Positions 9,705-33,622 of a stretch of DNA of 64,000 bases are shown here, in pieces (position 1 is the first letter of the stretch; each line of letters begins with the position of its first letter). The stretch lies in sequence record MW812339.1. One strand, given 5' to 3'. Made by a program: the position numbers and the translations under genes. The notes beneath the pieces are model-generated. The model ran no database searches. It saw nothing but the letters and a program-made list of their open reading frames with translations, and was not told the DNA's origin.

Positions 9705-10244
9705 TTACTGGTCCAGGTAGCGGAACAGTTTTCTTCGTGATGGGTCTTCAGGTTGTAACCCGAGGTCAAGTTCCTGAATCTCACCACCGCTGTTGATATC
9801 GTAACGGATTGCGACTTTCACCGCATCCGTAGCAGAGACACCTGCAGCCATTGCACCGATGGCGAATTCGCAACCGCTGCCGACTGCCATAGGCGGTTCG
9901 ACTTTCGCAATCCATGGAACGGCTTTCTCGACTTCCTGGCCACCTGTGTAAACTTCACCATCAACGGTGATAACCAGGTAAGACATCGAGATACCTTCCG
10001 GCCAACGAGTGTGGGCTGCAAGGCCCATTGTGTCGCCGTGACCGGCCAGAACATTGCGCAGAATCTGTTGGGATTCGATACCGCCAGCAACGCCAAACGC
10101 GATTGCTTGCTTGCCATCAACGAACCAGGTCTCGCCTTCCGGACACTTGAAGATTTTCTCAGTGCGGAGGTCGAGGCGATACTGCGCTTGAGTCATCTGG
10201 CTGTCAGATGCCAGAGATACACCGTCAAAAGCAATCGTGGTCAT
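9705..10244 (-). CDS. HslV/proteasome-beta-like Ntn hydrolase (putative threonine peptidase)
   Basis: N-terminal MTTIAFDG..LASDSQ, K near residue 30, and AVGSGCEFAIGAM (GSG motif). Confidence 0.75.
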   Translation of the reverse strand: MTTIAFDGVSLASDSQMTQAQYRLDLRTEKIFKCPEGETWFVDGKQAIAFGVAGGIESQQILRNVLAGHGDTMGLAAHTRWPEGISMSYLVITVDGEVYTGGQEVEKAVPWIAKVEPPMAVGSGCEFAIGAMAAGVSATDAVKVAIRYDINSGGEIQELDLGLQPEDPSRRKLFRYLDQ

Positions 10245-10411
10245 TTGGCGTCTCCGAATACGTTCGGGTCAACGTCGCTACCCTGGTTTGTTGCCTGGGC
10301 GGCTGTAACCTGTTGGTCATGCTCCTCGATAACACTGGCCAATGCGCCTTGGGCTTTGGCTGTGCGGTAATCGAGTTCGGTGCGTTTGCGTTGTTCTTGT
10401 TCTGGTGTCAT
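10241..10411 (-). CDS. Small hypothetical protein, 56 aa (below ORF-track cutoff)
   Basis: GGAG SD, MTPEQEQRKRTELDY...; stop overlaps start of HslV-like gene. Confidence 0.65.
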   Translation of the reverse strand: MTPEQEQRKRTELDYRTAKAQGALASVIEEHDQQVTAAQATNQGSDVDPNVFGDAK

Positions 10412-13094: not shown

Positions 13095-13625
13095 TTAGAA
13101 AGTGTAAACTTGATTGCCGATGGTAAAACCGAAACCACGAAGTTCTTTGTAGTTCTGGGTAGTGAACGCGCCTGCGATTTCCATATTGACGATTGTCCCC
13201 GGTTTCGCTTCGTCCCGCCACTTGATGTACAGGTCAGCATCCAGCGGTGCGAACATGCGAATGGTGTCGTCTGTAACTGCGTCGGTGATGTTTATCATCA
13301 GGCTCTTGAAACGCAGCTCAGGCAACAGAATAAGTTCCTGGAACTTGGTCAGTATCAGCACGGTATCGAGCAACCCCATGCCATTCAGAATTTCCTGCAG
13401 CCCTCTGATTGAGATAATCGTCAGGACATCCTCAGCGTAAAGGTACGTGGTGTTATCGACGGTGCTAATCTGAAAGATGAAATAGACCCCGTCTTTTTTC
13501 TCCCAGGTGATGTAGCAGTTGCTCCCATGAACATTAGAACGTTCGATAGTTTTCCAGTTAGCAGCCTTCTGTACATCCAGGCCACAGTTAGTTAATTCTT
13601 GAAAGTTTTTGTGCAGTTTGAACAT
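13095..13625 (-). CDS. Hypothetical protein, 176 aa
   Basis: AAGGA SD; KAANW motif. Confidence 0.7.
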   Translation of the reverse strand: MFKLHKNFQELTNCGLDVQKAANWKTIERSNVHGSNCYITWEKKDGVYFIFQISTVDNTTYLYAEDVLTIISIRGLQEILNGMGLLDTVLILTKFQELILLPELRFKSLMINITDAVTDDTIRMFAPLDADLYIKWRDEAKPGTIVNMEIAGAFTTQNYKELRGFGFTIGNQVYTF

Positions 13626-13657
13626 GGTTAAGATTCCTTAAGAATTTAAAAGTAGGT

Positions 13658-13685
13658 AGGCGTACTCCCCGAAGAGAGTACGCCT
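13658..13685 (-). terminator. Rho-independent terminator
   Basis: AGGCGTACTC/GAGTACGCCT 10-bp stem. Confidence 0.7.
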
Positions 13686-13689
13686 TGGT

Positions 13690-14199
13690 TTAGCACTTAA
13701 TCGTTACACCATCGATCCCCAGATGTACGGGTTTAACCCATAGCCCTGGCTCCCCAAAGATATTCAGGTCGTAAGTCTGATAGTACATGATTTTAGGCGG
13801 CACATGCACACCCATTCTTTGCAAGAACTCCCAAACGGCGGTATAGCGTTCGCGGGTGATAAACAGCAAACCCGAATCGAACCCTGACCCGATGTCCAGG
13901 AAATTGCCAAGAGTGTTGTCAAAACTTGACACGCCGTCTTGGGTAAGCGCCACCAACCCCTTGGTAAGATCGTGGTGGTTCTCGATGAACTCACACAAAT
14001 CCACCACGGTGAACTGGCCGAAAATGCGACGAAGGACGGCTGCGACCGCCAGGATTTCGCTGGTATTTCCGTAGTCACCTAATGGGTTATGGTCGACCAT
14101 TGCTGTAATTATGCTTGTGTCACACAGCTCCATCAAGCGGGCATCCTGGCACACTACTTGAAGTCTCTGTCCTACATGCATGGTTGGCGCAGTAAACAT
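13690..14199 (-). CDS. Hypothetical protein, about 169 aa
   Basis: GGAG SD before ATG 14199. Confidence 0.7.
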   Translation of the reverse strand: MFTAPTMHVGQRLQVVCQDARLMELCDTSIITAMVDHNPLGDYGNTSEILAVAAVLRRIFGQFTVVDLCEFIENHHDLTKGLVALTQDGVSSFDNTLGNFLDIGSGFDSGLLFITRERYTAVWEFLQRMGVHVPPKIMYYQTYDLNIFGEPGLWVKPVHLGIDGVTIKC

Positions 14200-30205: not shown

Positions 30206-30754
30206 CTAGATCTGCAGTAGTGTGCCCGAGTGTGATATCGGGTCGTTATAGAAGGCTTCACATTGAAGACAGATAGCTTCAATCTTCGGTTCTTCAGTAC
30301 GCGACCAAATCGCGCCACCACCTTGCAGAATCCATTCACGACAGTTACGACCATAATCGTCGACAAGCAAATTCCCCCGTGAGGCGTACGATGCTTTCTG
30401 CCCTGAGTTCTCAGTGACAATTACCTTGTCAGCTGGTACCCCAAAGTGTTTCAAGAACCAACGTTGTTTCGAATCTACTACGAGCTGATGATCGTAATGA
30501 TCTTCAGACCCAGAAGTCAAAATCGCCCAACTGTCGCACAGTCTATCGACCGTTTCCAGAATACGCTGCACACCCTCGATTGGCTCGAGTTTGTAGAACA
30601 GGTCTGGGTCACGCTGATACATCTCGCGTGTCAGACTACGACGCCGCAGTTCAGGTATTGCATTGAACTGCTTAATCGTCATTCCTGGAAAATGAGTTGA
30701 CAGAACATACTTGCGCCAGCGGGCAAACACGCCATCGCTATCCAGATAAAACAT
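30206..30754 (-). CDS. HAD-family 5'(3')-deoxyribonucleotidase (NT5C-like)
   Basis: FYLDSDGVF (DxD), KQRW, QKA, LLVDD motifs. Confidence 0.82.
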   Translation of the reverse strand: MFYLDSDGVFARWRKYVLSTHFPGMTIKQFNAIPELRRRSLTREMYQRDPDLFYKLEPIEGVQRILETVDRLCDSWAILTSGSEDHYDHQLVVDSKQRWFLKHFGVPADKVIVTENSGQKASYASRGNLLVDDYGRNCREWILQGGGAIWSRTEEPKIEAICLQCEAFYNDPISHSGTLLQI

Positions 30755-31786: not shown

Positions 31787-32590
31787 TTACCAGCTCCCTT
31801 TCCCCAGTCCCATGACACGCAGGTTGGAGACTCTCGGGGCCAGGTGCAGGTACTCCTGTGCAATTGCTTGCAGAGCACCGCGACGAGACTCGGTAGCGAC
31901 CGCGCTGGTTGCTTTCGGGTTGTAGATGATGTCTTCCAGCACCTCACGACTGATTGGACGGTCGATGTAAGTACGGGTAGATTCTTGTGCGACTTTACTA
32001 CCGCGCTGGATGGCGGAGTATTTGTTGCAAATCTGCAGACCGTCTTCGATAACCCAGTCAAAGGTTACCAGTTTGTCGATGCGACGAACGACCATCCCAC
32101 CTAGACGCCCTTCACGAACAATGGCACGCAGAGAGAAGCACACGTTTTGATGTGGGTTCTCCAGTGCTTCCGCTAACAGCGGACCACGTTCACGGTTAGG
32201 CTTCACCCAACCCCAGATTTCCATTACCGGCAGACCGTTGCACGTCTGGTCAGTCGGCTTGACCTCCACTTCACGAATATGCATACACACATTCTTAGTT
32301 TCGATCCATTCGTTACGTTCGATCCACTGAGCCTCGCTCATGCCTTGCTCGTACGGAGGGTGGTCTTCTTCACCGAAGAGATTACCCGCCTGCACTTTGC
32401 GCATGAACACATTGGAGCGCTCAAAGACGTGCTTTGATTCGTTATAGGCGTAGTAGATATTCTCAGAGTTGAAAATATTCAGTGCGCCTAACAGGACGTA
32501 GTAATAACCGTCCGCATCTTTTTGCAGCGTTGCCCCTTTGTTGACCCCAGCGAGTGCCACGCAGTTATAGCGTAGTGACATGTTTTCCAT
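31787..32590 (-). CDS. Prohead protease (phiKZ gp175/T4 gp21-like)
   Basis: LFGEEDHP (catalytic His), FSLR (catalytic Ser region), TFDWV; C-terminal AQE-S and ATE-S candidate autocleavage sites. Confidence 0.85.
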   Translation of the reverse strand: MENMSLRYNCVALAGVNKGATLQKDADGYYYVLLGALNIFNSENIYYAYNESKHVFERSNVFMRKVQAGNLFGEEDHPPYEQGMSEAQWIERNEWIETKNVCMHIREVEVKPTDQTCNGLPVMEIWGWVKPNRERGPLLAEALENPHQNVCFSLRAIVREGRLGGMVVRRIDKLVTFDWVIEDGLQICNKYSAIQRGSKVAQESTRTYIDRPISREVLEDIIYNPKATSAVATESRRGALQAIAQEYLHLAPRVSNLRVMGLGKGSW

Positions 32591-32608
32591 TGGTTTCCCC
32601 AGTTTGTT

Positions 32609-32878
32609 TTAACACCAGTGAATGCCGTTATCGCGAATCCAGTAATGCGACTTGCAAGGTATTTGATAACTCCCAATCGATGGAGACAGGGAAACCACTC
32701 CCTCCTGGTTCGTCATCTTCCATTGGGTTGGACCCAACGGCGTTACCACCTCAATTCCGCAGCCACACGCACACAAGTGAATGGCGGTGTTATAGCGAGT
32801 CGAGACGTAAAGTATCCCTTCGCGTAAGTCGCGCGGGATAACCTCCACAAATTGCGGTTTCATCATCGTTAACGGCAT
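32609..32878 (-). CDS. DUF6527-family small Cys/His metal-binding protein
   Basis: FVE.IP..L.EG.LYVS..Y.TAIHLCACGCG.EVVTPL.P..W...VSL.PSIG....PC.SHYWIR matches the DUF6527 pattern across its full length. Confidence 0.82.
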   Translation of the reverse strand: MPLTMMKPQFVEVIPRDLREGILYVSTRYNTAIHLCACGCGIEVVTPLGPTQWKMTNQEGVVSLSPSIGSYQIPCKSHYWIRDNGIHWC

Positions 32879-32883
32879 ACCGG

Positions 32884-33606
32884 TTACCTCATAAACAGAT
32901 CTTCAAGCGGCTCGGCACGTACGGGGTCGACTTGCAACGCAGAGCGGATACCCTGTTTGAGTTCCACGTCCGCCAGTTTCGCCAACCGAGACGTTTTGTT
33001 GAGTGAACCACTGCGCAGTGGAATGAACTGCACACGATTCATCAAATCACTGTCTTTCTTCAAGGTGTAACGGAAGTACGAGCGAGGGTCGCCTAACTTA
33101 CGCTGCGTGTGGGCAGCGTAACAGTCGGCGGTAATCTGGTCGGCGAAGACCTGGAAACCGTTCCACGTTTTCGTTTCAGACAACAGCTCAGCATCGTCTA
33201 TTGCCGTGAACCAGAACGGACGATTCCCGAAGTCGTAGATGTACGACGCGATGTTGTACACCGGACCAGACAGAACCTGCAGCTGACGGTTAGGGAACAC
33301 AACCGTGCCGGGGTCGAATCGGAACTCGTAGTACGGCTCACCATGAATGTCGACTTCCTCAAACGCAGACGGGGTAATTTCGATAAACGTTGTCACGTTC
33401 GAAACCCCGTAGGTTTTGCGGTCAGTGGAGATAGCAAACAGGCCCACGATTTCCACCTGAGAAGAAATCACCGCCAGCTCTTTAGCCACGAAGCCAACGG
33501 GGATGTAAATGTAACACCCCCCTTTGGTGAGAGTGGCCGTGCCTTGGTCCACTAAATCGGCATGAATTTTCGTCGGGTCACGACGAGCAGTTTCAATGGC
33601 GCTCAC
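32884..33606 (-). CDS. Virion protein, probable small virion RNA polymerase subunit (phiKZ gp176-like)
   Basis: Position between protease and vRNAP genes; RNAP role recalled from SPN3US gp244, not verifiable here; GTG start with AGAGAGG SD. Confidence 0.5.
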   Translation of the reverse strand: MSAIETARRDPTKIHADLVDQGTATLTKGGCYIYIPVGFVAKELAVISSQVEIVGLFAISTDRKTYGVSNVTTFIEITPSAFEEVDIHGEPYYEFRFDPGTVVFPNRQLQVLSGPVYNIASYIYDFGNRPFWFTAIDDAELLSETKTWNGFQVFADQITADCYAAHTQRKLGDPRSYFRYTLKKDSDLMNRVQFIPLRSGSLNKTSRLAKLADVELKQGIRSALQVDPVRAEPLEDLFMR

Positions 33607-33622
33607 GACCACCTCTCTTTAG

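Follow-up and report, generated by a model that had tools for sequence, protein, structure and literature searches.

Bacterial operons formerly designated '6E/DUF6527' have been renamed Bub and were found to conjugate the ubiquitin-like protein (Ubl) BubA via oxyester intermediates (Ye, Gong, Chambers, Corbett 2024, bioRxiv 10.1101/2024.11.21.623953). The DUF6527 protein of these operons, now called BubE, was identified in the same study as a new kind of serine protease, which in Citrobacter possesses a Ser-His dyad (S92/H102) and a C4 zinc site (C57/C59/C61/C99). Citrobacter BubE cuts a BubA-GFP fusion in vitro, and BubA-target conjugates are nearly abolished by BubE in cells; the enzyme is regarded by its authors as the negative regulator of the Bub pathway. 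Citrobacter BubE is nevertheless a very weak enzyme in vitro, with very slow turnover, and the substrates demonstrated for the family are BubA fusions and conjugates only. A flexible hydrophobic extension at the N- or C-terminus has been described as conserved across BubE proteins, and it has been proposed to restrain or localize the cellular enzyme. Engineered removal of this extension from Citrobacter BubE yielded insoluble protein, and no structure of a BubE has been solved, while AlphaFold3 (AF3) models predict that cellular BubE binds the C-terminal β-grasp domain of BubA. No Bub operon was found to protect E. coli against phage (Ye et al. 2024, bioRxiv 10.1101/2024.11.21.623953).

Erwinia phage pEa_SNUABM_29 (MW812339.1), which was isolated on Erwinia amylovora, belongs to the genus Seoulvirus; it is a jumbo phage of 248.8 kb, SPN3US-like and phiKZ-related. 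The stretch of DNA analyzed here (the window; 64,000 nucleotides) is 100% identical to this record and contains an 89-codon ORF with an ATG start and a TAA stop, whose product is annotated in the databases as a hypothetical protein only (Table 1). A first-pass annotation had placed this protein in DUF6527, and profile searching confirms the assignment, with Pfam PF20137 (DUF6527, now BubE) matching at E = 1.7e-22 and 79.5 bits (cut-off 23.6) over profile positions 2–63 of 63. The protein was also described as full-length, which is correct for the Pfam domain but not in comparison with cellular BubE, which is ~54 aa longer. That annotation treated DUF6527 as a family without an assigned function, a view superseded by the identification of BubE as a protease (Ye et al. 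2024, bioRxiv 10.1101/2024.11.21.623953).

The motifs quoted at that stage (of the type HLCACGCG, PSIG and PCKSHYW) are all present in the 89-aa protein, as H34-x-C36-x-C38-x-C40, P66-S67-I-G69 and C75-K-S-H78-Y-W. The residues H34, C36, C38, C40, S67, C75 and H78 all fall in family-invariant alignment columns; the columns of H34, C36, C38 and C40 are invariant in alignments of 24, 83 and 162 sequences, and those of C75 and H78 are invariant in the cellular homologues (best 80 of at least 575 loci). The spacing of the Ser, a Cys eight residues later and a His three residues beyond it parallels the S92/C99/H102 region of the Citrobacter enzyme. Based on these alignments, C36, C38, C40 and C75 are predicted to form a C4 zinc site, and S67 and H78 are predicted to form the Ser-His dyad. 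Searches of PHROGs, PADLOC and NCBIfam gave zero matches to pEa_SNUABM_29 BubE, indicating that the BubE family is absent from these phage- and defence-specific libraries. The final residue of the protein is a Cys (codon 32612–32614). Of the 76 viral short forms, 34 end in Cys, pEa_SNUABM_29 BubE among them, compared to 2 of 78 cellular forms (best 80 of at least 575 loci), where this residue is usually Ala or Ser.

Table 1. Features of the bubE locus of pEa_SNUABM_29, with positions given in the window
Feature	Position	Strand	Description
bubE-like gene QVW55228.1	32609..32878	-	89 aa, core-only DUF6527/BubE serine protease domain
H34-x-C36-x-C38-x-C40 codons	32759..32779	-	three of the four predicted zinc-site Cys; by spacing, equivalent to C57/C59/C61 of Citrobacter BubE
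Ser67 codon	32678..32680	-	predicted catalytic nucleophile; equivalent to S92 of Citrobacter BubE (role from Ye et al. 2024)
C75-K-S-H78 codons	32645..32656	-	predicted fourth zinc Cys and predicted catalytic His; equivalents C99 and H102
Segment absent from relatives	32605..32887	.	net insertion of ~275–280 bp into a 15–62 bp spacer
Prohead (head maturation) protease, Peptidase_S80	31787..32590	-	downstream neighbour; PF20034 E = 4.5e-87, phrog_3014 E = 6e-109
Virion structural protein of phiKZ-like phages	32884..33612	-	upstream neighbour; phrog_2926 E = 1.9e-94
Shine-Dalgarno-like GAGGT	32886..32890	-	7 nt 5' of the bubE ATG; overlaps the stop codon of the upstream gene

The fold of pEa_SNUABM_29 BubE was modelled with AlphaFold2 from an 83-sequence alignment. 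The model has a pLDDT of 95.0 and a pTM of 0.85 and contains eight β-strands, a predicted core that matches the published eight-strand topology of BubE. In the model of a cellular long form (P0002, 139 aa), this core leads into a helix predicted with confidence (residues 94–116) and a terminal helix of low confidence (residues 123–133). Foldseek comparison of the phage protein with the PDB returned nothing below E = 0.88, and a sequence search of the PDB found no relatives. The fold search of BFVD returned the self-match and one marginal entry only, A0A7S5UXZ9 (88 aa; E = 3.6e-3, TM 0.59, 24% identity), which may be a very distant phage relative of BubE.

The gene had been described as inserted in the head-morphogenesis module, and the related phages bear this out, pointing to a recent insertion. 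The structural gene and the protease gene are separated by 15–62 bp, with no intervening gene, in SPAsTU (85% identical), SPN3US, phiEaH2 and Asesino, and in alignments with SPAsTU and SPN3US conservation ends at approximately 32604–32609 and restarts at 32888. The flanking genes are, on one side, a prohead protease (PF20034, phrog_3014), as first reported, and, on the other, a conserved virion protein (phrog_2926); the latter has tblastn matches in 223 phiKZ-like phage records, including those of ~280-kb Pseudomonas phages. As bubE is present in only 1 of 53 related phage records, that of pEa_SNUABM_29 itself, the gene is dispensable for this lineage. The gaps around bubE are 5 nt to the upstream gene and 18 nt to the protease gene, whose ribosome-binding site is preserved by the insertion. 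Because these gaps are so short and lie within the head gene cluster, bubE probably shares a transcript with the late head genes. Scans for sigma-70 promoters and intrinsic terminators gave counts at the level of shuffled sequence, with none beside bubE; such scans carry no information on expression in a phage with its own RNA polymerases. A foreign composition of the gene was considered and rejected, as its GC (0.504) and GC3 (0.60) equal the phage averages (0.509 and 0.575), and composition consequently offers no clue to the donor or to the age of the capture. The same gene cluster also encodes, three genes downstream of the prohead protease gene, a homologue of NT5C-type 5'(3')-deoxyribonucleotidases (30206–30754, minus strand; Pfam E = 1.1e-07, phrog_2643).

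No E1, E2 or Ubl gene had been seen in the window, and this observation extends to the whole 248.8-kb genome. None of its 1824 six-frame ORFs matched home-made E1 and Ubl profiles built from 89 E1-like and 76 Ubl-like neighbour genes (best E values 0.19 and 0.58), and exactly one BubE was detected in the genome. The Ubl (BubA) and the E1 with E2 (BubBD, or BubAB and BubCD) that are co-encoded in a Bub operon are thus missing from pEa_SNUABM_29. A Bil system, marked by a BilC JAB/JAMM deubiquitinase with BilA, BilB and BilD, is not indicated at the locus: Pfam matches to JAB, ThiF or UQ_con domains were found neither in BubE nor in its neighbours, and there was no PADLOC hit.

The setting of the phage gene was compared with that of BubE copies in cellular and viral genomes. 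The cellular sample consisted of 80 loci from species-representative genomes (the best 80 of at least 575 matches; 79 complete ORFs) and over-represents Type II-like relatives of the pEa_SNUABM_29 query. The viral sample consisted of 79 IMG/VR loci (77 complete ORFs) on contigs that are predicted viruses. ORFs were rebuilt at each locus, and E1 and Ubl profiles were built from the neighbours in the operon of the closest relative. Among these best 80 of at least 575 cellular loci, a C-terminal extension of 23–91 aa (median 54) is found in 78 of 79 complete ORFs, a same-strand E1-type gene ends ≤100 nt upstream in 78 loci, and a Ubl is encoded in 71. In contrast, 70 of the 77 complete viral ORFs end 0–2 residues from the end of the core, and neither E1 nor Ubl was found near any of these 70. 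pEa_SNUABM_29 BubE follows the viral pattern, ending at the last residue of the core. The viral long forms, five in number, coincide exactly with the loci that have E1 or Ubl neighbours or lack the upstream flank, and they are probably whole Bub operons on prophage-like contigs. Conversely, the sole core-only copy in the cellular sample (L145:6001-6252, from an Arcobacteraceae MAG; best 80 of at least 575 loci) is flanked by a tail protein and an endolysin upstream and an integrase downstream, placing it in a prophage. In a test for an amphipathic helix, the hydrophobic moment of the cellular extension was 0.49 compared to 0.45 for shuffled sequence and was higher in 51 of 78 cases. The Ubl-like (Multi_ubiq) proteins encoded upstream of bubE in the Type II operons (L007 and L091–L170) end in T-[D/N]-[K/R]-S in 72 of 72 cases, so that the last residue is Ser rather than the Gly usual for ubiquitin-like proteins.

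The first-pass annotation had named presence or absence among jumbo phages as a check on its proposal. Of 50,697 phage records, only two contain homologues besides pEa_SNUABM_29. These are short forms from the Burkholderia jumbo phage FLC9 (104 aa, 56% identity to pEa_SNUABM_29 BubE) and Dulem virus 40 (94 aa, 46% identity), and all three isolates encode a core-only BubE with no E1 or Ubl nearby. Ten BubE viral contigs are 184–394 kb in size, with a tail sheath (L048) or tail fibre (L057) gene in 2 of the 10 loci sampled. Five more short forms were found in protein databases (P0009, P0011, P0038, P0151 and P0183), none with E1 or Ubl; they occur among runs of small genes that share one orientation, on contigs of up to 238 kb, and the neighbours in this group include Macro, Tpt1-like, RNA-ligase, Cpn10 and methylase genes. 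On phage contigs, Macro, Tpt1-like (PTS_2-RNA) and RNA-ligase genes lie within a few kb of core-only BubE (L178:6379-6822 and 13561-14133; L179:2971-3942; L180:3441-4508). These gene types are often tied to the reversal of host-inflicted damage. A conserved partner gene was sought in a ~90-aa ORF that overlaps the start of phage bubE in several loci, and this candidate was rejected because the blastp and phmmer clusters join closely related contigs only. Outside pEa_SNUABM_29, phage bubE copies occur in unrelated gene contexts with no conserved partner.

Conservation of the predicted catalytic residues was followed in 76 core-only forms, a set that combines viral contigs with phage isolates and metagenomic contigs of phage-like character. 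The catalytic Ser is retained in 72 of 76 (78 of 78 in the cellular forms; best 80 of at least 575 loci) and the catalytic His in 70 of 76, while the His of the first motif and the three-cysteine knuckle are invariant in 76 of 76. Pairwise dN/dS values are 0.12–0.24 in three phage BubE clades, and the phage copies are under purifying selection.

Several variants were seen among these forms. The column of the fourth zinc Cys is Tyr in 22 of 76, which define a phage-only Y-H-A-H-Y subfamily with Tyr then His at the fourth-Cys site and an insertion of 2–3 residues before it (L047–L050, L054, L056, L058, L059, L061, L064–L067, L070, L072, L076, L078, L081, L082 and L089; match position about 10001–10280 in most). 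The zinc site in this subfamily may have been rebuilt as Cys3-His. Two further forms (L086/L087) have Cys in place of the Ser with the His retained, a possible swap of the nucleophile; two (L083/L084) carry Ser to Met and His to Arg replacements and look inactive; and two (L088/L090) end 18 residues early, before the catalytic His.

The origin of the pEa_SNUABM_29 copy was examined with a neighbour-joining tree of 147 unique cores, on which the short/long character switches 5 times compared to a mean of 48 in label shuffles (minimum 38). So few changes indicate a small number of old phage lineages and some separate events. The core of pEa_SNUABM_29 falls outside the large phage clades. When 410 unique cores were ranked by their score against it, the top 14 were long forms without exception, and in 871 of 1000 column bootstraps its best neighbour was again a long form. 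The expectation that DUF6527 relatives lie in operons with ThiF/E1 and Ubl genes was borne out as well, since the nearest relatives are directly downstream of Ubl and E2-E1 (ThiF) genes. The closest of them (63–67% identity) belongs to a Multi_ubiq, DUF6791-ThiF and BubE operon beside SIR2-HerA on a conjugative element. That the pEa_SNUABM_29 core is closest to these cellular operon copies suggests that it was acquired separately from a Type II Bub operon and lost the extension at the residue where other phage copies also end; with only 89 alignment columns, the support for this is moderate. No donor can be named, as the nearest cellular copies belong to unrelated phyla (Actinomycetota and Pseudomonadota MAGs) at ≤67% identity.

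Taken together, these results suggest, with a probability of roughly one half, that the pEa_SNUABM_29 gene encodes a catalytically competent minimal BubE that would cleave host Bub conjugates. In the proposed mechanism, a zinc-stabilized Ser67-His78 protease lacking the extension would be made during late gene expression, a timing that the position of the gene implies. This enzyme would cut the bond between host BubA and its attached target, thereby cancelling host tagging, so that the phage would supply the Bub pathway's own negative regulator in a free and unregulated form. The recurrent and exact loss of the extension suggests that this region restrains or localizes the cellular enzyme and that phages gain by losing it; its removal may free the enzyme from regulation or from tethering to the membrane. 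From the same pattern we infer that Bub tagging acts against phages. A role in counter-defence is the most reasonable reading of this lone insert, and to that extent the earlier proposal of a captured inhibitor of Ubl-based defence stands. Its dominant-negative component is not supported, as the zinc cysteines and the dyad are retained.

That component supposes that phage BubE binds the host Ubl or E1/E2 without catalysis and titrates the conjugation machinery. A lone small domain should still bind the C-terminal β-grasp domain of BubA (AF3, Ye et al.), the in vitro turnover of BubE is very slow, and phage variants that appear non-catalytic do exist (L083/L084 and L088/L090, described above). 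Catalysis is favoured over such binding, however, because the dyad is retained in pEa_SNUABM_29, together with all four Cys, and is conserved in phages. Retention of Ser in 72 of 76 and of His in 70 of 76 forms under purifying selection would be needless for a pure binder, and a decoy is very improbable. It is also improbable, if less so, that the gene is a passenger without selected function, that is, a fragment of a Bub operon acquired from the host or a mobile element via illegitimate recombination and not yet lost. The presence of bubE in only 1 of 53 related phage records would fit such an event, as would promoter and terminator signals that do not rise above chance. In opposition, the ORF is intact and trimmed exactly to the domain, a Shine-Dalgarno-like site of its own precedes it, the ribosome-binding site of the protease gene is left preserved, its GC and GC3 (0.504 and 0.60) match those of the phage (0.509 and 0.575), and the core-only architecture is found in more than 70 phage contigs under purifying selection.

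Alternatively, phage BubE could be an active protease whose substrate lies outside the Bub pathway, for example in another conjugation-based defence (Bil or type II CBASS), among host proteins or among the phage proteins of head maturation; this is unlikely, yet the likeliest of these three alternatives. The gene adjoins the prohead protease in the head gene cluster, no Erwinia entry stands in the published catalogue of Bub operons or among the plasmid matches listed, and the phage forms have diverged in ways that may signal altered specificity (the YHAHY subfamily; a terminal Cys in 34 of 76 viral compared to 2 of 78 cellular forms). Yet the close relatives all assemble heads without bubE, so the protein is not a component of head maturation, and in other phages the gene occurs in unrelated contexts without a conserved partner. 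Moreover, the nearest relatives are bona fide members of Bub operons, and BubA fusions and conjugates are the only substrates demonstrated for the family. The connection to Bil made in the first-pass annotation holds only by analogy: the peptidase of Bil is an unrelated JAB enzyme, and virion proteins have been shown to be Ubl targets for Bil (Hor, Wolf and Sorek 2023), not for Bub.

On the host side, the published catalogue of Bub operons includes E. coli, Salmonella, Citrobacter, Klebsiella and Enterobacter, with no entry for Erwinia or Pantoea. A plasmid search (157 matches) gave no Erwinia or Pantoea Bub operon among the matches listed, which are mostly from Acinetobacter, Ralstonia and rhizobia. 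To our knowledge, no Bub operon is known in E. amylovora. One enterobacterial copy among the plasmid matches listed, from Klebsiella, shares 53% identity with pEa_SNUABM_29 BubE, and the recognition of BubA by BubE may be specific to cognate pairs. As no Bub operon has been shown to protect against phage, there is at present no demonstrated defence for phage BubE to counter.

It is tentatively proposed, as a view that falls a little short of an even chance, that core-only orphan BubE constitutes a widespread, previously unreported family of phage counter-defence proteins captured from Bub operons more than once, each time without the helical extension. If true, phage BubE would be the first natural anti-Bub factor and, on comparative grounds, the first evidence that Bub pathways truly serve in anti-phage immunity, with pEa_SNUABM_29 as a recent, independent example in a late head-gene cluster. 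The occurrence of a lone, trimmed, dyad-retaining BubE in many phages, jumbo phages included, is the arms-race footprint expected if Bub tagging harms phages. No report of a phage-encoded BubE or DUF6527 protein was found in the literature examined, in which pEa_SNUABM_29 itself is only listed in a review. The BubE family is known, and the phage-specific core-only orphan class and its meaning for Bub biology appear to be new. Bub is a biochemically unusual Ubl pathway, and core-only phage BubE shows which phage-host pairs merit study. In addition, the phage proteins are natural core-only forms of 85–100 aa, and the very high confidence of the pEa_SNUABM_29 model points to a route to a structure.

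Among described systems, phage BubE is most similar to the BubE proteins of Type II Bub operons (e.g. E. coli ZDHYS365) and of the Type I operon of Citrobacter sp. RHBSTW-00271, which belong to the same Pfam family. It shares with cellular BubE the predicted eight-strand core, the C4 zinc cysteines and the Ser-His dyad. It differs from cellular BubE in that it has no extension and no E1, E2 or Ubl partner in its genome, and in that it is encoded by a lytic jumbo phage within a head gene cluster. The JAB/JAMM peptidases Cap3 (type II CBASS) and BilC (Bil) have the same proposed role, cleaving the Ubl-target or enzyme-target conjugates made by an E1/E2 machine. These enzymes are, however, metalloproteases with a fold unrelated to that of the Ser-His protease BubE, and no JAB domain was detected in the phage protein. 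Deubiquitinase (JAB/MPN) domains in the tail assembly proteins of siphophages have been speculated to be anti-Bil measures (Hor, Wolf and Sorek 2023). Like phage BubE, they are proposed deconjugases encoded with structural genes that would strip Ubl from virion parts. They differ in that they belong to another protease family and are fused to a structural protein, whereas phage BubE is a free protein of 89 aa; both roles are hypothetical. Eukaryotic viruses likewise encode deubiquitinases and deISGylases that undo antiviral Ubl conjugation by the host. Phage BubE has no sequence or fold kinship with these enzymes (nothing below E = 0.88 in the Foldseek comparison with the PDB), and the proposed logic is the same.
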